Of a DNA stretch of 64,000 nucleotides, positions 3,804 to 57,418 are shown piece after piece (positions within the stretch are counted from its first letter, which is position 1; every line of letters begins with the position of its first letter). Location: the IMG/VR virus record IMGVR_UViG_3300037010_003311, positions 1-64,000 of that record; one strand, 5' to 3'. The translations under genes and the position numbers were made by a program. Under the pieces are notes generated by a model that was given only the letters and a program-made list of their open reading frames with translations, did no database searches and was not told the DNA's origin.

Positions 3804-4565
3804 ATGAAAAAATTGTTAGTTGCGAGTATGAGTGGTGGATTAGATTCAGCCACTTTGGTCCGTAAAGCATTAGGGGAAGGATATATAGTTCTTCCCGTAA
3901 ATTTTCAATATGGTCAAAAAAACTATATTGAATCCGTCGCTCAAAGCAATCTTATCGAATTTTTCGATAAGAAATTTCCAAACCAAATTTTAAAAACGGT
4001 TAGTATAGACACCACCCGTATTATTTCGGACTTTATTGTCCAATACCAAAGTGCTAGAGATAGTGGTTTGGTATTGGAGAAAACCGGGGAGGAGTTCTAT
4101 ACCCCAAGCCGAAATCTTTTATTTATGACCCTATGTGCGGTCATAGGTGAAATTACGGCAATAGGTAGTGGATACGATGAGATCAGTATTGGTCTCGGTA
4201 TTCATAAACATAGTAGTGAAAACTACAAAAAGGACTACTGGGATATAACCCCAGAGTTCGTAAACCGGTTACAAAACCTGCTGGAGTTAAATGATAGTGT
4301 GAAAATCAATATCTATTCTCCATATGTGGAAGAATTCAAATCTGGTATCATTCAAGATGCCGAAGATATGAATCTTCCATTTTCTTTAACTTGGTCATGC
4401 TATGATCCGGTTTTAGAAATCCACGAAGATGGATTTTCTTCGAAAAAAAATATTTTTAAACCATGTAAAGCATGCGAAGCATGTCTCGAAAGAGATTCAC
4501 AAGCCCGTAAAATTGGAATATATGGAATTAATGATTATTTCATAGAAACTAAAATAGCAAACTAA
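3804..4565 (+). CDS. queC: 7-cyano-7-deazaguanine synthase
   Basis: SGGLDS PP-loop, YGQK, P.RN, TWSCY and PCxxCxxC zinc motif. Confidence 0.93.
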   Translation: MKKLLVASMSGGLDSATLVRKALGEGYIVLPVNFQYGQKNYIESVAQSNLIEFFDKKFPNQILKTVSIDTTRIISDFIVQYQSARDSGLVLEKTGEEFYTPSRNLLFMTLCAVIGEITAIGSGYDEISIGLGIHKHSSENYKKDYWDITPEFVNRLQNLLELNDSVKINIYSPYVEEFKSGIIQDAEDMNLPFSLTWSCYDPVLEIHEDGFSSKKNIFKPCKACEACLERDSQARKIGIYGINDYFIETKIAN

Positions 4566-8389: not shown

Positions 8390-8593
8390 ATGTTAGAATC
8401 TCTCTTAATGGTGGTAATATGCCATCGGCAAGTAACTGCTACCGAAAAACTTAGTGAGGATGGTTGCAAAAAAGCAACCGAATACATTATGGATAAAAGT
8501 AGCTGTACAGCAGAATGTGTACCAATTGGTGGCCTTAAAGGCTTAAAAGATAGGGCTAAGAATGGTCTTAAAAAAGTGGAGGAAAAATTATAA
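8390..8593 (+). CDS. hypothetical protein
   Basis: GGAG RBS; stop overlaps next start. Confidence 0.55.
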   Translation: MLESLLMVVICHRQVTATEKLSEDGCKKATEYIMDKSSCTAECVPIGGLKGLKDRAKNGLKKVEEKL

Positions 8594-9480
8594 TGAAAAA
8601 AAATAAAGTTTCCAAAGCTAAGATTCTTAGTCTTTTAAAACGAATTGCAGAAGCTTCATTTACTATAACTAAATGGAATAATAAAATAGAAGTTAGGTTC
8701 CAGACTCCATTTTATAAAGATCATTACACTTGGAGGAATAATGAAGTAAAATGGATTGCTCCAGATAATAACCTTATCTGGGAAAGTAGTAGATCAAATG
8801 TATTAACCCTCAACAATGTTACAAATAACATTCTTACAAACGAGGAAAAAATGTTATTTGAACGATGTGGGTTCCAAGTTATGGGTAATGATGTTATTTT
8901 GTTTATGAGTAATTTGGAGTTATCTATTAATATTGGAACTGAGGAAAGCCTTAAAGAAATTTTTATTGCTGCAAAAAACCGGGCAGAAAAAGAAGCCAGT
9001 AAGATCACAGATCCAACAAAGTTTCATTTTAAAAAAAAGGCAATTGGTACCAATTACAAGGTGGAAGCTTTTATTCAAAAGGATGGCCGACCAACATTAT
9101 CTACTCTAATCTTAAATGAGAACGAACTTAGTTTCGTGCAGGAAGCCATAAAACTCTTCAAAAATAAGAAAGCCACTACTACCAAAATTGTAGATTTTTT
9201 TATTAAGTACAAATTTGAAGTTTGTAAAAATGTAAGATCCAGTCGGGATAATGGGTATGGTAGTTACACCTATTTCAATGCTCAATATAAATTAATACTA
9301 CCAGGTCCTGCAGTGGATCACACCAACCAGCAGGTTCTAGATTTTAAAAAGATTATGCCAATTCTAACGGATGCCTATCGTATTTATATGCAACCGAGGT
9401 CTGGTTTATATCTTGATAATGAAACGAGCACTGGATGGGCAATATATAGTACTCAAGGGGGATACACATATGTTGGATAA
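8593..9480 (+). CDS. hypothetical protein
   Basis: 295-aa ORF. Confidence 0.7.
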   Translation: MKKNKVSKAKILSLLKRIAEASFTITKWNNKIEVRFQTPFYKDHYTWRNNEVKWIAPDNNLIWESSRSNVLTLNNVTNNILTNEEKMLFERCGFQVMGNDVILFMSNLELSINIGTEESLKEIFIAAKNRAEKEASKITDPTKFHFKKKAIGTNYKVEAFIQKDGRPTLSTLILNENELSFVQEAIKLFKNKKATTTKIVDFFIKYKFEVCKNVRSSRDNGYGSYTYFNAQYKLILPGPAVDHTNQQVLDFKKIMPILTDAYRIYMQPRSGLYLDNETSTGWAIYSTQGGYTYVG

Positions 9481-9880
9481 ATTGGAACATTATAAACCAG
9501 GGAATGAAGAGTTGATTCAAGATATCAAACTTATTCATCTTAATGTAAAAAAATATGGTGTCACATTAAAAGATGCCGATATTTCCCGAGAGGATATTTT
9601 AATTATAAAAAAACCTCTAGTTGCAATACTTGAAAGTTTCGATATCCAGCTTTTAAAAACTGGTATTTTTGTCGATTTGTATAAAAAGAAACATAGTTAT
9701 TTGAAAGTAAAGATAACTATTAATCCAGTTAAATGGAAAAAGGTTGATCAGGAGTTAGTTGATAGCATATTTGATGCAGTAGATAAAGCTACTAATGGTC
9801 TGGTGAAAGTTGAATACTTTGACTCAAAGTTTCAATTTTTTAATTTATGGTTTACGGACCCAAAAAACTTAAAAGGATAA
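9470..9880 (+). CDS. hypothetical protein
   Basis: ATG after AAGGGGG. Confidence 0.6.
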   Translation: MLDKLEHYKPGNEELIQDIKLIHLNVKKYGVTLKDADISREDILIIKKPLVAILESFDIQLLKTGIFVDLYKKKHSYLKVKITINPVKWKKVDQELVDSIFDAVDKATNGLVKVEYFDSKFQFFNLWFTDPKNLKG

Positions 9881-46845: not shown

Positions 46846-47577
46846 ATGGCAAGTAAAGTTATTTCTACTTATTATATAGGAAATGTTCCAGTATATGCCG
46901 GAGCTCAAGGTGGTGCTCATACTCAAAATGGGTGCATGTTTAATTTTAACATCCGAGTTAAACCAGAAATCAATAATGTTGGGATTATGATTATTAAAAC
47001 GAATGATCCAATAATTCATAGTTATGATAATACAACTAGGGCTCCAGAATTCGAATTGGATCTTAGTAATCTCACAAAACTGATTACGCTTTTAAAAGTA
47101 AGAGGTTTCGCTAGCCCAACACAAGGAGCTCAGGAGTTTATTAAACTTGGAGTGACTACTCAAGCGAAATATGCAGACCGCATAAAAATGGCATGGGTTA
47201 AATCTTTTCAAGATACTACAACCTTTATAATTGAAACTAACGGTCAACAAGAAATGTTCGTGGTAGAAGGGATATTTCAAAATGAATATCTATTAGATGT
47301 ATTACAATCAACAAGAGAACTTTTAATTAGCTCTAAAGTAGCCGATGAAATAATCGTTACTCGTGGTACAACTAATAATGTTGGAAATTCGATGCCTGGT
47401 ATTCCAGGTGGAATAGGTATGTCACCAGTATCTACCGTTGGAACAATGTTACCAAACTTTACTGGAACTCCAGCGGCACCTACTGCTCCAGCGGCACCTA
47501 CTGCTCCAGCGGCACCTACTGCTCCAGCGGCACCAGCAATACCAGGTGTACCAAATATGCCTGGATTGCCGGCTTAA
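46846..47577 (+). CDS. hypothetical protein with Pro/Ala-rich tail; candidate Whirly/PC4-like ssDNA-binding protein
   Basis: SYD...FELDLSNLTKL segment; low-complexity tail. Confidence 0.4.
   Translation: MASKVISTYYIGNVPVYAGAQGGAHTQNGCMFNFNIRVKPEINNVGIMIIKTNDPIIHSYDNTTRAPEFELDLSNLTKLITLLKVRGFASPTQGAQEFIKLGVTTQAKYADRIKMAWVKSFQDTTTFIIETNGQQEMFVVEGIFQNEYLLDVLQSTRELLISSKVADEIIVTRGTTNNVGNSMPGIPGGIGMSPVSTVGTMLPNFTGTPAAPTAPAAPTAPAAPTAPAAPAIPGVPNMPGLPA
47468..47534 (+). repeat. 18-bp in-frame tandem repeat (PAAPTA, about 3.7 copies)
   Basis: CTCCAGCGGCACCTACTG repeated. Confidence 0.9.
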
Positions 47578-47610
47578 TAAATTAAATAAATTTCAAGGAC
47601 CATATATAAT

Positions 47611-48378
47611 ATGTTAACCGAGCAAGATAAATTAAAAATCGTTTTAAAAAGTATGTCTAAAAAAAGATATAAAGCAGCGTTAAAAGAGCTTAACAATATT
47701 CCGTTATTTAAAGCTGATGGCAACTATCCGTTGTCGTTAGATGTTAGAGCTGTAATGGCGAATGAGGGTTCGATTGGTTTGGCTAAACTTTTAAGAGATA
47801 CGTTTAGATTTGATTTAACAGATCCAAACGTTAAAGATACCCCAAGTAGAGTAGCTAGTATGTGGGTAAATGAACTTATGGTTGGCAGATATACGGATAA
47901 ACCACGTCTGGAAGCATTTCCCGTCGAGGAAAAACATTTAAGTAAACATAGTATAGAAATGTTGCACGAAGATGCCTCTGTTTTAGAGTACGATGGGATA
48001 ATCATTAAAAAGATTGATGTTCGATCATTATGTTCGCATCATCTTATGCCTTTCTTTTCTGATGGTAAAAAGTCTTTTGCTTTAGTAGCTTATATACCAA
48101 CAACTAAGTTTTTAGGTATTAGTAAAATTCAACGTTTATCTAATTGGTATGGTGCAAGACCATCACTACAAGAGCAATTAACTTGGTCAATATATAAAGA
48201 GATGTGTGACACTCTTGGTACAGACGATGTATTTGTAATTATGAAAAACATTACACATACTTGCGAAACTCTACGTGGAGCTAAAACTGAAGATGGTAGT
48301 ACTACTACTATGTTCTATGGTGGAAAATTTAAAGATATCAAGAAACGTAATGAAGTAATCAATTTGGCAGCAGATTAA
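47611..48378 (+). CDS. folE: GTP cyclohydrolase I
   Basis: DTP.RVA, SLCSHHLMPF, GISKI.R, LQE, HTC..RG. Confidence 0.93.
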   Translation: MLTEQDKLKIVLKSMSKKRYKAALKELNNIPLFKADGNYPLSLDVRAVMANEGSIGLAKLLRDTFRFDLTDPNVKDTPSRVASMWVNELMVGRYTDKPRLEAFPVEEKHLSKHSIEMLHEDASVLEYDGIIIKKIDVRSLCSHHLMPFFSDGKKSFALVAYIPTTKFLGISKIQRLSNWYGARPSLQEQLTWSIYKEMCDTLGTDDVFVIMKNITHTCETLRGAKTEDGSTTTMFYGGKFKDIKKRNEVINLAAD

Positions 48379-48418
48379 TCGTTTAGGTTAAGTTATATCC
48401 AAATTAGAGGAGGTAATT

Positions 48419-48877
48419 ATGGAGAATAATGCAATTAATGATCTATGGTTTCTACCATTAGATTTCATTGAAAAGACCGAAAACGATAAGCGTTTAGTGT
48501 ATAGTGATACTGATTCTGTGGTGGGAAATTCAATTATTATAGTAAATGGTAAACCTATTAAAATTGAAGATTTTTATAATTCTTTACCTAATAACTATAT
48601 TGAAGAAAAAGATCATCACTTTGTAAAAAAAAGTGATGGTTTTGTAACGTTAACCGTTAATGATAATCATGAGCTCATAGATAAAGAAATTATTTATTGT
48701 ATGAAGCATTTAGTAAAAAAAAGATTTTTCCGAATTAAAACTGATACAAATGAAGTAATAATCACAGAGGATCATTCATTGATGGTTAAAAGAAATGGTT
48801 ATTTAATTGGTATAAAAGTTAAAGAACTGATGGAAGGTGATGAAATATATGAAATTTCAGAATCCCCCACTTTGTAG
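48419..48877 (+). CDS. family B DNA polymerase fragment (32-aa N-extein ending YSDTD) fused to split-intein N part
   Basis: YSDTD|SVVGNS block A, ITEDH block B; ORF ends after about 120 intein residues. Confidence 0.88.
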   Translation: MENNAINDLWFLPLDFIEKTENDKRLVYSDTDSVVGNSIIIVNGKPIKIEDFYNSLPNNYIEEKDHHFVKKSDGFVTLTVNDNHELIDKEIIYCMKHLVKKRFFRIKTDTNEVIITEDHSLMVKRNGYLIGIKVKELMEGDEIYEISESPTL

Positions 48878-49022
48878 AACGTGCTCTAATAAATTGATTG
48901 ATGATTCAATTTGGCAAAAATATATTAATGGTGAAACCGATCTAAAGGATAAAAAATTTTTCAATAATTTTTATTCTAAACTTAAAAAAAGGATATCAAA
49001 TGATATTAAAATTGAAAAATGA
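48849..49022 (+). CDS. small CxxC ORF between the split-intein halves (possible homing endonuclease remnant)
   Basis: MKFQNPPLCRTCSNKL; overlaps both flanking ORFs in a third frame. Confidence 0.45.
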   Translation: MKFQNPPLCRTCSNKLIDDSIWQKYINGETDLKDKKFFNNFYSKLKKRISNDIKIEK

Positions 49023-50004
49023 TTTTATAGTTGAAGATTTAGGTATTCGAGAAGAATGGGTTTATGATATAGAAGTTAAAGATAATCATAATTTCTTTGC
49101 AAATAATATCTTAGTACACAATTCCGCATATTTGCTATTCGATTTACCATTCAATAAATTTGATGATATCCGGCAACTGGTTGATTATATACAGCAGTTG
49201 TCGACTAAAATTGATACAGAATACAATAATGCTTTAAATTATTATGGTTCAATGTTTGCGGGGTTAAATCCTGAATTCAATATTATGAAATTTAAATCAG
49301 AAGTTGTAGCGTATCAAGGCTTCTTCAACACCAAAAAGTTTTATGCATTGAGTAAAGCTTGGGACGAAGGAGCTTTCTTTGATACGCCAGAAATTAAAAA
49401 GACCGGTGGCCAAATTAAGAAAGCAGACGTTACTAAGATATCGGAACAGCTTTTATCCTTAGTCTATAAAATACTTGTTTTACCATCAGAAACTAAAGAT
49501 CTTGAGTCATTATATAAAAAGATCTTTATTGAGACTAAAAACCGTATTAAAATGCAACTAAAGCATGATATAGATAATCTTGATTTTAAAAGTTTCGGTG
49601 TACCAAAAAAATGGAGTTTTAAAGCTACAAAAGATATGCAGTGGGTAACCGGTGCAAGATTGTATAATCAAATAGTGGAGGATCTTCACCGCCCTGGAGA
49701 TTCAATGTTAACTCTTCCAATTAAAGGGAATTTTAACATTCTTCAAAACTATGATGAACAATTATCTTTAAAAAATAAAGATTTAACTTATCTACTTAAA
49801 GCTGATGATTATAATGATATATCTACTTTAAGTATTCCACCGAATATGAATTCTGAACAAGTACAAAAACTATCAGCGGCATTTGAAAAATATTCAATTC
49901 GAGTAGATTTTGATCAGGTAATGTTATTTAATATAGATATGAAATTGGAAGTATTTGAAAAACTATTTCCCCCAGAAATTAAATTATTGGTAAAGGGAGA
50001 TTGA
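49000..50004 (+). CDS. split-intein C part (41 aa) fused to family B DNA polymerase C-terminal palm/thumb
   Basis: own AAAGGA RBS; VYDIEV..NHNFFANNILVHN|SAY; downstream FKSE and KKFY PolB-like motifs. Confidence 0.88.
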   Translation: MILKLKNDFIVEDLGIREEWVYDIEVKDNHNFFANNILVHNSAYLLFDLPFNKFDDIRQLVDYIQQLSTKIDTEYNNALNYYGSMFAGLNPEFNIMKFKSEVVAYQGFFNTKKFYALSKAWDEGAFFDTPEIKKTGGQIKKADVTKISEQLLSLVYKILVLPSETKDLESLYKKIFIETKNRIKMQLKHDIDNLDFKSFGVPKKWSFKATKDMQWVTGARLYNQIVEDLHRPGDSMLTLPIKGNFNILQNYDEQLSLKNKDLTYLLKADDYNDISTLSIPPNMNSEQVQKLSAAFEKYSIRVDFDQVMLFNIDMKLEVFEKLFPPEIKLLVKGD

Positions 50005-51089
50005 TGTTAATAGATCCTGCGAATACTCATATTTGTACCCCAGAACTTTATCAACAGTTAATGGATATGATTAAAAAACAACAAATTGCATTTCATCAAT
50101 TTTATAACGTTGAGATAGAAACTGATGAATTACCATTTCTAAATTTCATGCAAACCTATAAAGATAATCAAGCTACAAAGGTTTTAAATAAAACCTACTA
50201 CGATATCGAAACTTATGGTGTCAATGAAAATGGTGAAATAGTAGATGAATTCCCGGAAGTAGATAAAGCTGCGTTTCCAGTAAACGCTGTAGCCTTATAT
50301 AACAATATTACTAATGAAGCTACCATTATATCTTATGTAAATGATTGTAACATTACTGATCCAGTAGCTTTACAAGCTGGGGTTGAAGAATACTATGCTA
50401 AAACGGTCATAGAAAATCCAATCTATGAAATTCAAGATTTAAAAATCATAGTCGAAATAGTTGAAAATGAAAAACAACTTTTCCAATCATTTCATACCAA
50501 AATTCATTCGTTAGATACACTAATGTTGATTGGATTCAATAGTTCATTATTCGATGATGTATATATGATGAATAGAGGATCTAAGCTTTTTGGTGAGGAA
50601 GTATATCATAGTATGGTTTCAGAATTTCAAGTTACCAAATATAGTAGCCGGGTATTTGAGTGGCCAGATTATCTTTTGGTTGATCTATTAAAACTATACC
50701 AACCAGTTGATTCTGGTGGTATGGGCCTAGGCCAATCATTATCAAGTTATAAGCTAGATAATATTGCCGAAGTTGAATTAGGTATACAAAAATTAGATCT
50801 TGATGGGGGTTTCGTAAAAACCTATAGAACCAACATCGTTCAATATTTGACATACAACCTGATGGATACACTATTGACTTTTAAATTAGATCAAAAACTT
50901 CAATTTATTGAGCAAATTTATAGCTTATCGAAGTATAATAATTCGTCGATTGGTGCAACTATTAATGGTCGGTCAATCATGTATAAATATAGAAACGATC
51001 TTATTTATGCTAATCAAAAAAAATTGATCCGTGCTAAAAAATATTCTAGGGAAGTTTTTTATCAGATTGAAAAGGAGGTTAAAAAGTGA
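50004..51089 (+). CDS. family B DNA polymerase 3'-5' exonuclease domain as a separate gene
   Basis: ExoI YDIET, ExoII GFNS..FD..Y, YKLD.IA..ELG..K, ExoIII YN..D. Confidence 0.88.
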   Translation: MLIDPANTHICTPELYQQLMDMIKKQQIAFHQFYNVEIETDELPFLNFMQTYKDNQATKVLNKTYYDIETYGVNENGEIVDEFPEVDKAAFPVNAVALYNNITNEATIISYVNDCNITDPVALQAGVEEYYAKTVIENPIYEIQDLKIIVEIVENEKQLFQSFHTKIHSLDTLMLIGFNSSLFDDVYMMNRGSKLFGEEVYHSMVSEFQVTKYSSRVFEWPDYLLVDLLKLYQPVDSGGMGLGQSLSSYKLDNIAEVELGIQKLDLDGGFVKTYRTNIVQYLTYNLMDTLLTFKLDQKLQFIEQIYSLSKYNNSSIGATINGRSIMYKYRNDLIYANQKKLIRAKKYSREVFYQIEKEVKK

Positions 51090-51529
51090 AACAACTTGGA
51101 TCCGAGAATTTAACTATAATTGATAAATTAGAAAATATTAATAAGTTAACTTCCGATATAGACCAAAATATAAAACTGTGTAAATCAATTATAACAGTAA
51201 ATAATAAAGTCTCCGAGGATACATTAGAGCTCATCGAATCTATAAATTTAGATATTGATAAGCTTAAACAAGAGCAATTTTATATACTCGAAAATAATTA
51301 TAATTCAAAACTAACGTTCCGTGGCATCGAATATCGAGTATTAGAATTGATTAAAATTAAAGAAGCGTTAAAAGCTAAAATGGATGCAATTATTGATTAT
51401 TTAAAAGTCATGGAAGATCAGGAGATTGATCAATACCACCTTAGAGTCCAAACCTTATTAAATACAATAAAAACGGAATACCGAGATATAAATAGAGTGT
51501 TGTATCTCCACAATACTAAAAAGGCTTAG
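51086..51529 (+). CDS. coiled-coil hypothetical protein
   Basis: GTG after AGGAGG. Confidence 0.6.
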   Translation: MKQLGSENLTIIDKLENINKLTSDIDQNIKLCKSIITVNNKVSEDTLELIESINLDIDKLKQEQFYILENNYNSKLTFRGIEYRVLELIKIKEALKAKMDAIIDYLKVMEDQEIDQYHLRVQTLLNTIKTEYRDINRVLYLHNTKKA

Positions 51530-51540
51530 AAAGGCGCAAG

Positions 51541-52383
51541 ATGAAAGAAAACGAAAAAAATAGATTCGAGTTAAGTGAAAGGGATCCATATCTTTCACAA
51601 ACTTTTTATAGCTTAGAGGGTGAAGGAATGACTCTAGGGCGAACAGCTTTATTCTTAAGAATAAATGGTTGTAATGCTACTTGTACATTCTGTGACACAA
51701 GTTTTAGTATCAAGGGTGAAGAAAAATATAATCTTGTAAATATGGCAGAACCAGAATTTGTGGATTATCTTCGTAAAGAATACCAGCATCTTGATATTGA
51801 ACATGTGAATTCTATTACTATAACCGGTGGTGAACCACTTAAAAATATTAAACAGTTTAATAGAATGTTTAAAAATATTCTACATGTGTTTCCTAAAGTG
51901 GAGCATGTAATATTCGAAACTAATGGTACCTACCTAAGTTCGACTAGTAACTGTTTAAAGCTATTACGAGAAATTGGAGAATTTATTAATATAGATCAGA
52001 TTAACTTTACTTTAAGTATCAGTCCAAAACTATCCAGTAAAATGAGCTGGAGTAAAACAGATGATGCTGAAGTTTTATCTTGGTATAACGATATTCTTCA
52101 TAATTATAAATATTATCTAAATCGTTATTTAGATATACAAATGAAGTTTATTCAATTTCCAAATGATAGTGAATACTTTAATTTGAATCAAAATCTAATA
52201 AATTTATGTAAGGAATACAATATTCCAAACTATAAGATATTGATTATGCCTTTTACTCCACCAGATCCACTTGGTAAAGATAGTGCTATTTGGACAGAAT
52301 CTAAAGATACTGCGGCGAGATATGCGTTAAAGCATAATTTTAGATACAGTCCTCGTATCCATATTGATCGCAAATTGGATTAA
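51541..52383 (+). CDS. queE: 7-carboxy-7-deazaguanine synthase (radical SAM)
   Basis: FYSLEGEG, FLR..GCNxxCxFCDT, TGGEP, ETNG, ISPK, SPRIH. Confidence 0.92.
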   Translation: MKENEKNRFELSERDPYLSQTFYSLEGEGMTLGRTALFLRINGCNATCTFCDTSFSIKGEEKYNLVNMAEPEFVDYLRKEYQHLDIEHVNSITITGGEPLKNIKQFNRMFKNILHVFPKVEHVIFETNGTYLSSTSNCLKLLREIGEFINIDQINFTLSISPKLSSKMSWSKTDDAEVLSWYNDILHNYKYYLNRYLDIQMKFIQFPNDSEYFNLNQNLINLCKEYNIPNYKILIMPFTPPDPLGKDSAIWTESKDTAARYALKHNFRYSPRIHIDRKLD

Positions 52384-55433: not shown

Positions 55434-55865
55434 TTGATAGATTTAAAAATGAGTGAAACAGAAGTATCTCCACCAGCAATTGCGGAAGTAAATGCCTCTA
55501 CCGATTTAGATACTGGTGGGAAATATACAAAGATTATAAATCTTACGAATCATAAACTAACGGAAATTCTTAGTGGGATCCAAATTGATTTCTCTGAGAG
55601 TGGCGTAGCTAGAGTTGATTGTAGAGATGAAATCATTTATCGTGATCCATCTGGTTATACAATTTCTCGTACAAAATATGTACATATTGTTGGCATCGAT
55701 TTGGATAATATTAATCCAAATCATTTATACATAGTTTCAGCTGTGGTATTGAATGCCATTCGTGAACGTGGATTACAATTTGATAATATTGTGGCACCAG
55801 CTAAAATCATTAGGGATAGTGATAACAACGTTATTGCGGCTAGGGGGTTCCGAGTAAATGGTTAA
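55434..55865 (+). CDS. phage hypothetical protein
   Basis: NLT.H, SGVARV, YIVS, RD..N.I...GF motifs. Confidence 0.65.
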   Translation: MIDLKMSETEVSPPAIAEVNASTDLDTGGKYTKIINLTNHKLTEILSGIQIDFSESGVARVDCRDEIIYRDPSGYTISRTKYVHIVGIDLDNINPNHLYIVSAVVLNAIRERGLQFDNIVAPAKIIRDSDNNVIAARGFRVNG

Positions 55866-57418
55866 TGGAAAAGTTAAAATTAGAAATTGAGCAAAAATTA
55901 TTCAATTCCAGGAACCGAATCGATTATGTATATTTGAAAAAATATCCAGAAATCTTAAATCGGGCCCAAGAGCATATGACTGGATTTGATGATAAGATTA
56001 CTTCATCTCAATTAGTTTTATTTTTTTACGAAGGTATATTGTCACCACCTAAGTGTCAGAACGCACATTGTGAAAAATATGTTAAGTGGTGGTCGAATAA
56101 AAAATGCTTTTCCAAATATTGTTGCATAAAATGTAGTAATTCTGATCCAGAAAAAGATCAAACAACTATTAAAAATAATATGGAAAAATATGGTGTACCA
56201 AGAGCATCTATGACCACTGAATCTAAACAGAAACTTTTAAATACTAATTTGTGCCGGTATGGTGTAAGTAGTACCGCTCAATTAAAAGAAGTAAAAGATA
56301 AAGCTAAACAAACCTGTTTAAAAAAGTATAATTATATATCAAGTTCTATATCCGATATAAAAAATCTGGAAGAATATTCTAATCGGGATTTTATAATTGA
56401 AAATTTTATAAACGATAATATTTTTGATTTATATGGATTTCGAAATTATTTTAATTGTGGTCAAGTTGCTGCTCATAATACTTTAAACCGCTTAAATATT
56501 GATTATAATAAGTACGCGGCAAGAAATACTTTTATAGAGCGGATCGTTGAAGATTTTTTAAAAGAAAATAATATAACTTTTATCAAAAATGATAGAATGG
56601 TTCTTAATGGTAAAGAACTTGATTTCTATTTACCAGAGCATAAGCTTGGAGTAGAATTAAATGGTTTATATTGGCATAGTTATAATACAAAAACAAAAAT
56701 TTTAAAATCAAAAAAAGATATTAAAAATTTTCACCGTATTAAAACCGATAGATGTGAAGAACAGAATATACAACTTTTTCATATATTCGAAAATGAAATT
56801 CTTTATAAGTTTGAGATATGGAAATCAGTATTAGAAAACACTCTTGGTAGAAGCATACAACTAGAAGCCGAGGATCATACTATTAAGCCGGTACCCAAAT
56901 ATGATATAAAACCATTTCTAGAAGCTAATCACTTACAAGGTTACTGCTCAAGTTCAATTGCTTATGGTCTGTATTATAATAACAATAATACTGGAATACC
57001 AGAGCTAATAAGCATTATGACTTTTACTAAAGGTAGTGGAAGTGCTGATTGGGAGCTAATGCGATTTTGTAATAAACTTGGTTATAATGTTTATGGTGCA
57101 GCAAGCAGATTGCTTAAAGCATTTCGGGTTGGGTACAAAGGAAATATTAAAACCTGTGTAAATAGGCGCTGGTCGAATGGTAACTTATACCGACAACTTG
57201 GTTTCCAAGAAATTGGTATAAGTGAACCGAATAAATTCATTATTAATTTTAATAAGATTAATAATTTATATAGTAGACTAGCTTTTCAAAAATACAAATT
57301 GCCAAAAAATTCAAATTTCGATAATACTTTATCAGCTGATGAAAATATCATAAATAATGGTTATGGAATCATTTGGGATTCTGGTCAAATAAATTTTATC
57401 TTAAAAGGAGATATATGA
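55865..57418 (+). CDS. Hef-like free-standing homing endonuclease with C-terminal GNAT-like region
   Basis: N-terminal Cys cluster, KYG repeats, ELDFY..GVELNGLYWHS nuclease motif, NHLQG..ELMRF..GAASRL..LGF..WDSG. Confidence 0.75.
   Translation: MEKLKLEIEQKLFNSRNRIDYVYLKKYPEILNRAQEHMTGFDDKITSSQLVLFFYEGILSPPKCQNAHCEKYVKWWSNKKCFSKYCCIKCSNSDPEKDQTTIKNNMEKYGVPRASMTTESKQKLLNTNLCRYGVSSTAQLKEVKDKAKQTCLKKYNYISSSISDIKNLEEYSNRDFIIENFINDNIFDLYGFRNYFNCGQVAAHNTLNRLNIDYNKYAARNTFIERIVEDFLKENNITFIKNDRMVLNGKELDFYLPEHKLGVELNGLYWHSYNTKTKILKSKKDIKNFHRIKTDRCEEQNIQLFHIFENEILYKFEIWKSVLENTLGRSIQLEAEDHTIKPVPKYDIKPFLEANHLQGYCSSSIAYGLYYNNNNTGIPELISIMTFTKGSGSADWELMRFCNKLGYNVYGAASRLLKAFRVGYKGNIKTCVNRRWSNGNLYRQLGFQEIGISEPNKFIINFNKINNLYSRLAFQKYKLPKNSNFDNTLSADENIINNGYGIIWDSGQINFILKGDI

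Follow-up and report, generated by a model that had tools for sequence, protein, structure and literature searches.

A naturally split serine intein at motif C of a family-B DNA polymerase encoded in permuted pieces by an uncultured jumbo phage

The first 64,000 nucleotides of IMG/VR virus record IMGVR_UViG_3300037010_003311, referred to here as the window, contain a naturally split intein in motif C of a family-B DNA polymerase (PolB) that is distributed over several genes. The record is a linear phage contig of 226,657 bp (G000:C1) with a guanine-plus-cytosine (GC) content of 32% and an estimated completeness of 81%. Its source is an uncultured T4-like jumbo phage. A megablast search with positions 47600-51600 against GenBank phages gave zero matches and thus points to the lack of a close cultured relative. 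We propose, with a probability of roughly 80%, that the locus is a degenerate 'fractured gene' for the only family-B polymerase found on the contig, and that its intein halves splice in trans to yield one subunit of a three-subunit replicase.

The intein locus consists of three overlapping open reading frames (ORFs) on the plus strand, one in each frame. ORF1 (48419-48877; 152 residues) starts 5 nucleotides after a Shine-Dalgarno-like GAGGAGG (48407-48413) and encodes a short N-extein followed by the N-terminal half of the intein. The N-extein comprises 32 codons (48419-48514; MENNAINDLWFLPLDFIEKTENDKRLVYSDTD, MENN...RLVYSDTD) and includes the DTD of PolB motif C. The N-intein, 120 codons and a stop (48515-48877), runs SVVGNSIIIV...TEDHS...GDEIYEISESPTL, contains Ser1, the His of an MKH motif and the block B sequence TEDHS, and covers positions 5-93 of Pfam PF14890. 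ORF3 (49000-50004; 334 residues) lies in a frame other than that of ORF1, with stops between the two, and has a ribosome-binding site of its own, as had been predicted, in the form of a Shine-Dalgarno-like AAGGA (48989-48993) 6 nucleotides ahead of its ATG. It reads MILKLKNDFIVEDLGIREEWVYDIEVKDNHNFFANNILVHN and then continues as SAYLLFDLPFNK...; its first 41 codons (49000-49122) are the C-intein with blocks F and G (VYDIEV..NHNFFANNILVHN), which ends in ILVHN and matches PF14890 positions 132-155 as well as PDB entry 9HTH. The remaining 293 codons and stop (49123-50004) encode the C-extein, beginning with Ser+1 (49123-49125) and AYLLF and comprising the rest of the palm (KKFYAL) and the PolB thumb.

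The residues of serine splicing chemistry are in place in both halves, whose lengths of 120 and 41 residues fall within the ranges for split inteins (about 100-120 and 35-50). Serine occupies intein position 1 straight after the N-extein (DTD/SVVGNS, the slash marking the junction), the T-x-x-H of block B is TEDH at intein residues 84-87, and blocks F and G (VYDIEV...NHNFFANNILVHN/S) end in a penultimate His and a terminal Asn followed by Ser+1. Ser1, T-x-D-H-S, the terminal HN and Ser+1 are invariant in 25 of the 25 related loci over which catalytic residues were compared, at a divergence of about 40-55%. Invariant positions in our alignments (A1/A2) are DTD/SVVG, the His of MKH, T-x-D-H-S, VYDIEV, H-N-F and ILVHN/S. 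The MKH His (intein residue 65) aligns with the MKH68 of the PolB1 intein from Aeromonas phage Aes123, and His68 has been highlighted for cysteine-less inteins (PMC13014065). There is one Cys in the N half (YCMKH) and none in the C half. The counterpart of this Cys in the Aes123 PolB1 intein is Ile65, two residues before the conserved His68. It is therefore taken to be non-catalytic, in agreement with the original prediction, and the intein to be cysteine-independent, though not cysteine-free. At 24%, the GC content of the intein DNA (48515-49122) is below the 32% of the genome, which is what an acquired element would lead one to expect. The original prediction postulated, from the letters of the DNA, a naturally split intein of the Ser1/Ser+1 type in two ORFs of different frames, extending from 48419 to the Ser+1 codon; the arrangement can be read directly, the Pfam, PDB and PHROG matches described below agree with it, and the coordinates, residue assignments and the count of one Cys all proved correct. 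ORF2, which lies between the halves, was absent from that account.

The split is reproduced in independent data. Logan contigs from four public runs, two from microbial-mat and two from sediment metagenomes, span 48609-49155 without a single difference or gap, and no indels were reported in 47600-51200 among the matches listed. In the interval 48830-49030, for which indels merging the ORFs into one had been named as a risk, the contigs (not raw reads) of the four runs were identical and no such indel was present. Because of this identity, the split is not an assembly artefact. Two runs with strain variants (X2, X4) carry single-nucleotide polymorphisms on both sides of the locus and, among the matches listed, none within 48341-49385.

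Homologues were sought with Pfam, PHROG and PDB profiles, by tblastn against GenBank phages, and among metagenomic loci, of which L005 (IMGVR_UViG_3300003873_000007, record G001) is the nearest relative. Pfam Intein_splicing matches both halves (2.9e-6 and 1e-5) over complementary parts of one domain. PHROG 27191 ('DNA polymerase') matches ORF1 at 5e-29, and the only solved structure matched by ORF1 is that of the Aes123 PolB1 intein (PDB 9HTH; E 1.8e-24 for the N half). The first 45 residues of ORF3 match the 9HTH chain (3.5e-8) and the PolB16 intein (5e-5). These matches are well above what chance would produce. The comparison with known inteins that the original prediction had called for thus leads to the Aes123/CP21 PolB1 family. 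With both the homology and an identical insertion site, DTD/S in PolB motif C, the intein is classed by sequence as a new, divergent member of this known and biochemically validated phage family of serine split inteins. In tblastn the N half is 46-53% identical to N-inteins of Aeromonas and Campylobacter phages. The two-gene arrangement recurs in several groups of GenBank phages. Aeromonas phages Aes508, Aes516 and AS-gz and Tenacibaculum phage PTm1 have it annotated as an intein-containing split DNA polymerase precursor, and Aes123 as 'DNA polymerase subunit'; it is unannotated or generically named in Campylobacter phages CP21, F379 and CC_R7, in PA5oct-like Pseudomonas jumbo phages and in Lak megaphages.

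Splicing has been demonstrated for two members of the family. Aes123 PolB1, a naturally split and cysteine-independent intein from which the engineered CL and CLm inteins were derived, is active in trans-splicing in vitro (PMC13014065; bioRxiv 10.1101/2025.01.22.634254), and CP21 PolB1 splices in vitro to about 40% (PMC12707363). The residues and the site found here agree with these tested relatives, so that the part of the original prediction concerned with the product, YSDTD joined to SAY, is well founded, with splicing itself to be read as a prediction.

The polymerase into which the intein is inserted is encoded in four ORFs. Downstream of the thumb piece, an N-terminal/3'-5' exonuclease piece (50004-51089, plus strand) matches Pfam PF03104 (9e-8) and positions 102-350 of phrog_262 (1.8e-34) and carries Exo I (DIE), Exo II (NSSLFD) and Exo III (YNLMD); its ATG overlaps the thumb stop codon (TGATG). 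The palm/fingers piece of 414 residues, with motif A (DARSLYPT) and motif B (KTTLNTGYG), is located another 38 kb downstream of the exonuclease gene (G000:C1:88924-90168; L001:1378-2622). The thumb piece matches the phrog_262 DNA polymerase at positions 581-793 of 856 (E 7e-13) and, in tblastn, the C-terminal parts of phage gp43. The pieces tile phrog_262 without overlap, the exonuclease covering 102-350, palm/fingers 382-550 and thumb 581-793, and the 32-residue N-extein fills the gap ahead of motif C. All family-B motifs, Exo I-III, A and B, are present, with motif C (YSDTD/S) split by the intein; rather than being co-linear on one or two polypeptides, they are spread over four ORFs, starting with motif C and the thumb and continuing with the exonuclease and palm/fingers. 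Between its motifs A and B, the palm/fingers piece is longer than the T4-type profile by about 200 residues (371 residues aligned to 169 profile positions). A six-frame scan of the 226-kb contig found a single Y-x-DTD-S and each polymerase piece once, and no other polymerase was detected in it. A PolA candidate, a 13.6-bit Pfam match inside a 1921-residue minus-strand ORF (G000:C1:~156.9-160 kb, L028), was dismissed as noise. After splicing, these ORFs should yield a replicase of three polypeptides, 325, 361 and 414 residues long.

The two intein genes are bridged by ORF2 (48837-49022), an ORF of 61 codons in the third frame (GTG at 48837, ATG at 48840) that shares 41 nucleotides with the end of the N-intein gene and 23 with the beginning of the C-intein gene. 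Its origin became apparent from BLASTP comparison with L005, in which a 373-residue endonuclease ORF lies between the intein halves. ORF2 residues 1-29 match the same positions of this endonuclease (E 2e-5), while ORF2 residues 14-53 correspond to endonuclease residues 338-371 (E 4e-5). The L005 protein is in turn homologous (1e-31 in pairwise BLASTP) to the putative Vsr-like homing endonuclease that Aeromonas phage Aes508 encodes between its intein halves (Aes508_035). The kinship of the endonucleases was set by pairwise BLASTP, since Pfam scans of those from L005, PTm1 and F379 returned no family and that of Aes508_035 returned only weak DUF559/REase matches. Because it matches both ends of the L005 endonuclease, ORF2 is identified as a deletion remnant, the scar of a Vsr-like free-standing homing endonuclease after in-frame loss of roughly 310 codons. 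Both overlaps with the intein genes were kept in the deletion. Among the scars compared (window, L005 endonuclease and L006), only the first ~29 residues are conserved, which fits a remnant, though ORF2 may also act as an independent small protein.

Related loci show other states of the same site. Comparable remnants of 52 codons (L006) and 54 codons (L033/L034) and a bridging ORF of 16 codons (L010) lie between the halves elsewhere, and L019 (5826-5993) retains only a C-terminal Vsr-like remnant. In L018 (5271-5957) and L021 (5302-5976), a GIY-YIG-type ORF takes the place of the Vsr-like one; different endonucleases have thus used one split site. Since L005 and L006 resemble one another more than they do the window, there were two or more losses of the endonuclease, or a single loss followed by a regain. 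Contiguous mini-inteins in one ORF occupy the same site at four loci with distinct exteins (L007/8, L012/13, L014 and L025), and the exteins of the contiguous L012/13 are near-identical to those of the split, endonuclease-bearing L011. The coexistence of split alleles, contiguous alleles and scars suggests that splitness tracks endonuclease invasion and decay, as the fractured-gene model proposes (PMC2677866). In-frame bridging scars recur, as they would if translational coupling of the C half were selected for.

The arrangement around the intein is conserved well beyond the window. In L005, L006, L031/32 and L033/34, as in the window, FolE is followed by short extein/N-intein, endonuclease or scar, C-intein/thumb, exonuclease, small ORF and QueE, and protein identities are just 42-54% for L005 and L006. 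In the L005 record the palm/fingers gene is again found downstream, at a distance of about 9 kb; none was found in the L006 record (G002), a negative of little weight given an estimated completeness of just 26%. In all other relatives examined, the exonuclease piece is upstream, in canonical order, wherever it was detected. The N-extein measures 31-43 residues in L005/L006, about 26 in L010 and about 60-78 in P0007/P0010/P0011, and short N-exteins without motif B are common in the family. The motif WFLP..FIEKT..D....Y.DTD is common to the N-exteins of the window, L005, L006 and the P0007-P0019 types. The original prediction singled out the 32-residue N-extein as unusual; its length is real, and it turns out to be a conserved feature of a metagenomic clade rather than a one-off. 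Conservation over such divergence argues that the arrangement is functional and not decaying, and with at least four divergent metagenomic lineages sharing it, the short N-extein and the gene order are probably a stable, functional arrangement.

Among characterized systems, Aes123 PolB1 (Aes123, Aes508 and AS-gz; gp43B-1/gp43B-2; 9HTH) has the same DTD/S site and the same canonical split position, with Ser1, Ser+1, the His68 equivalent, TxDHS and HN in common, halves of 120 and ~40 residues and 46% identity in the N half. It differs in that Aes508 has a full Vsr-like endonuclease of 353 residues between the halves instead of a 61-codon scar, the N-extein is about 200 residues long and contains a group I intron, the intein is devoid of Cys, and the gene order is canonical (gp43A, B-1, B-2). 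The closest cultured match is CP21 PolB1 (CP21, F379 and CC_R7), which uses serine chemistry and is 52-53% identical in the N half; as here, queuosine-type genes lie beside the polymerase in the CP21-type Campylobacter phage. In F379, however, the N-extein is the whole exonuclease/palm/fingers part of 620 residues, and two small ORFs separate the halves. PTm1 (ORF-239/240/241: split precursor, VSR endonuclease and polymerase) is likewise a jumbo phage, about as large, in which PolB comes in several pieces and carries an intein of the same family at 36% identity, but its gene order is canonical, its endonuclease intact and its N-extein of ~145 residues still holds motif B. The fractured genes of Dassa et al. 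2009 (PMC2677866), in which a free-standing Vsr-like homing endonuclease separates the split intein halves, share the architecture in origin, and the scar derives from the endonuclease family described there. In place of an intact free-standing endonuclease between the halves there is a 61-codon ORF, and the locus corresponds to a later step in their scheme, reached once the endonuclease has gone. PolB was not found among the fractured-gene enzyme types in the passages of that article that were consulted. The split PolB of N. equitans, which is rejoined by a split intein, and the two-gene PolB of Methanothermobacter (both from the introduction of PMC2677866) are likewise family-B polymerases in pieces, yet they are archaeal and comprise only two; a literature search on the N. 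equitans intein insertion site, which the original prediction gave as the one found here, returned nothing.

Taken with the behaviour of the relatives, the locus suggests the following course of events. A mobile class-1 intein with Ser1/Ser+1 chemistry would have entered exactly at DTD/S of motif C and would then have been split at the canonical endonuclease position, leaving the N half fused to the upstream extein and the C half to the downstream extein. An in-frame deletion would later have reduced the Vsr-like endonuclease lying between them to ORF2. ORF1 and ORF3 are presumably made from one transcript; co-expression is suggested by the adjacency of the intein genes on the same strand, their bridging by ORF2 and the TGATG coupling of the exonuclease gene. 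The halves would associate and fold into the HINT horseshoe, the fold being given by the solved homologue 9HTH, and splicing would follow the oxyester route with an N-O shift at Ser1, transesterification to Ser+1 and Asn cyclisation. The expected product is a polypeptide of 325 residues in which motif C is restored as YSDTDSAY and joined to the thumb, with LVYSDTDSAYLLFDLPFNK as the junction peptide, and which would pair non-covalently with the exonuclease and palm/fingers pieces to form the replicase.

Several points weigh against this proposal. We infer splicing from relatives that are just 46-53% identical, and even for these the wild-type N-precursors of Aes123 and CP21 were only ~30-40% spliced in vitro owing to aggregation (bioRxiv 10.1101/2025.01.22.634254; PMC12707363). 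Both halves carry a net charge of -4, as opposed to +8/-11 in Aes508; the strong global charge complementarity is gone and only local basic/acidic pairing is left between them. A second polymerase may be encoded elsewhere, the contig being just 81% complete, and the Logan contigs that confirm the split are assembler output, from which rare variants are dropped, and not raw reads.

The missing charge complementarity would also suit halves that are splice-dead and serve only as high-affinity docking domains, through which the thumb would hold on to the 32-residue DTD peptide non-covalently. A precedent for mobile-element sequences turned into association domains is the fragmented NrdA of Aeromonas phage Aeh1 (PMC3045599). 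Nevertheless, Ser1, TxDHS, the His68 equivalent, HN and Ser+1 are retained both here and throughout the 25 relatives, and an unspliced intein of 161 residues in the middle of motif C would probably obstruct catalysis at the active site; docking alone is very unlikely. Trans-splicing might instead act as a regulated post-translational switch for replication, as the original prediction envisaged, with a separately made or stabilised N-precursor gating the polymerase. The catalytic DTD is indeed physically apart from the rest of the enzyme until splicing, and the very short N-extein is conserved in the clade. Yet the genes for the two halves are direct neighbours with one orientation, ORF2 overlaps both of them, the TGATG-coupled exonuclease gene follows, and a promoter and terminator scan of 47500-51700 gave no enrichment over shuffled sequences, being uninformative for the gap between the halves. 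In addition, contiguous mini-intein alleles exist with near-identical exteins (L011 versus L012/13), so that splitness seems to be a side effect of the arrival and loss of endonucleases and not a requirement. We consider a switch very unlikely and did not retain this part of the prediction. A variant idea, that the 152-residue precursor is a separately tuned 'activator' donating the DTD peptide, with the scar ORFs of 16-61 codons setting ratio or timing by translational coupling and so gating replication by the three-subunit PolB, is a speculation we regard as doubtful at best.

Neither decay nor sequencing error accounts for the locus as well as a functional split gene does. A polymerase in four pieces and permuted order on an incomplete contig could be the non-functional debris of rearrangement in a phage that uses another replicase. 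All exonuclease and polymerase motifs are intact, though, no other polymerase was found, and the arrangement persists over lineages with 42-54% protein identity and hence appears to be under purifying selection; decay is extremely unlikely. An A7 homopolymer at 48984-48990 among A-rich runs in the gap, together with the contiguous alleles of relatives, might raise the suspicion that frameshift errors broke a contiguous intein into three ORFs. This would require two frameshifts, shared by four independent run assemblies, in front of and behind a middle ORF that is recognisable as an endonuclease remnant, and split loci with scars also occur in L006, L010 and L034. The chance of such an artefact is close to negligible.

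A split Ser/Ser intein at phage PolB motif C is already known and exploited. To this the present analysis adds the in-frame endonuclease scar, an allelic series that covers all stages of the fractured-gene cycle and the conserved, permuted three-subunit PolB of an uncultured clade. For the intein field, the locus adds a natural Ser1/Ser+1 split intein that is 46-53% identical to Aes123/CP21 and has one non-catalytic Cys. The interest in protein ligation voiced in the original prediction holds in so far as the intein is a candidate orthogonal partner and its natural N-extein of 32 residues a natural example of short-peptide ligation; its value as a cysteine-less tool is reduced by the one Cys, and the family is already in use. 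Split alleles with a Vsr-like endonuclease, with a GIY-YIG endonuclease or with an in-frame scar, and the re-fused contiguous mini-intein, form one allelic series that documents later steps of the fractured-gene model (PMC2677866). With regard to phage biology, an uncultured clade of T4-like jumbo phages would replicate with a replicase of three polypeptides encoded in permuted order; we found no description of such an enzyme, and no search was aimed at it.

The polymerase cluster is embedded among genes of queuosine-type metabolism. A GTP cyclohydrolase I gene (FolE; 47611-48378, plus strand; Pfam PF01227, 5.7e-35) precedes it, as in L005, L006, L031 and L033, and a radical-SAM QueE-like gene of 280 residues (51541-52383, plus strand; PF04055/PF13353) is its conserved downstream neighbour. 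FolE and QueE bracket the cluster in every relative, and F379 has QueC beside its polymerase. The L005 QueE homologue (8518-9825; 435 residues) contains a mini-intein (PT-HINT 1.7e-7, Intein_splicing 1.7e-7) that the window QueE lacks. Two QueC-like genes and QueD are also encoded (window 3819-4499; G000:C1:71456-72046 and 91558-92256), and no match to TGT/DpdA was found when sought. This combination suggests that the phage DNA is probably 7-deazaguanine-modified and that the modified base is perhaps made at the nucleotide level.

Three further ORFs of the window deserve mention. An ORF of 147 residues without a family (51086-51529) overlaps the stop codon of the exonuclease gene, and ORFs of 121-148 residues occur at the equivalent position in L005, L006, L031 and L033; it could encode a polymerase accessory factor. 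The ORF at 55865-57418 (517 residues) matches homing/HNH endonuclease families (phrog_3339, 6e-95) and is another mobile-element gene. The ORF at 46846-47577 (243 residues) ends in a proline/alanine repeat with several copies of (T)APAAP, and an ORF in an alternative frame spans the same repeat.

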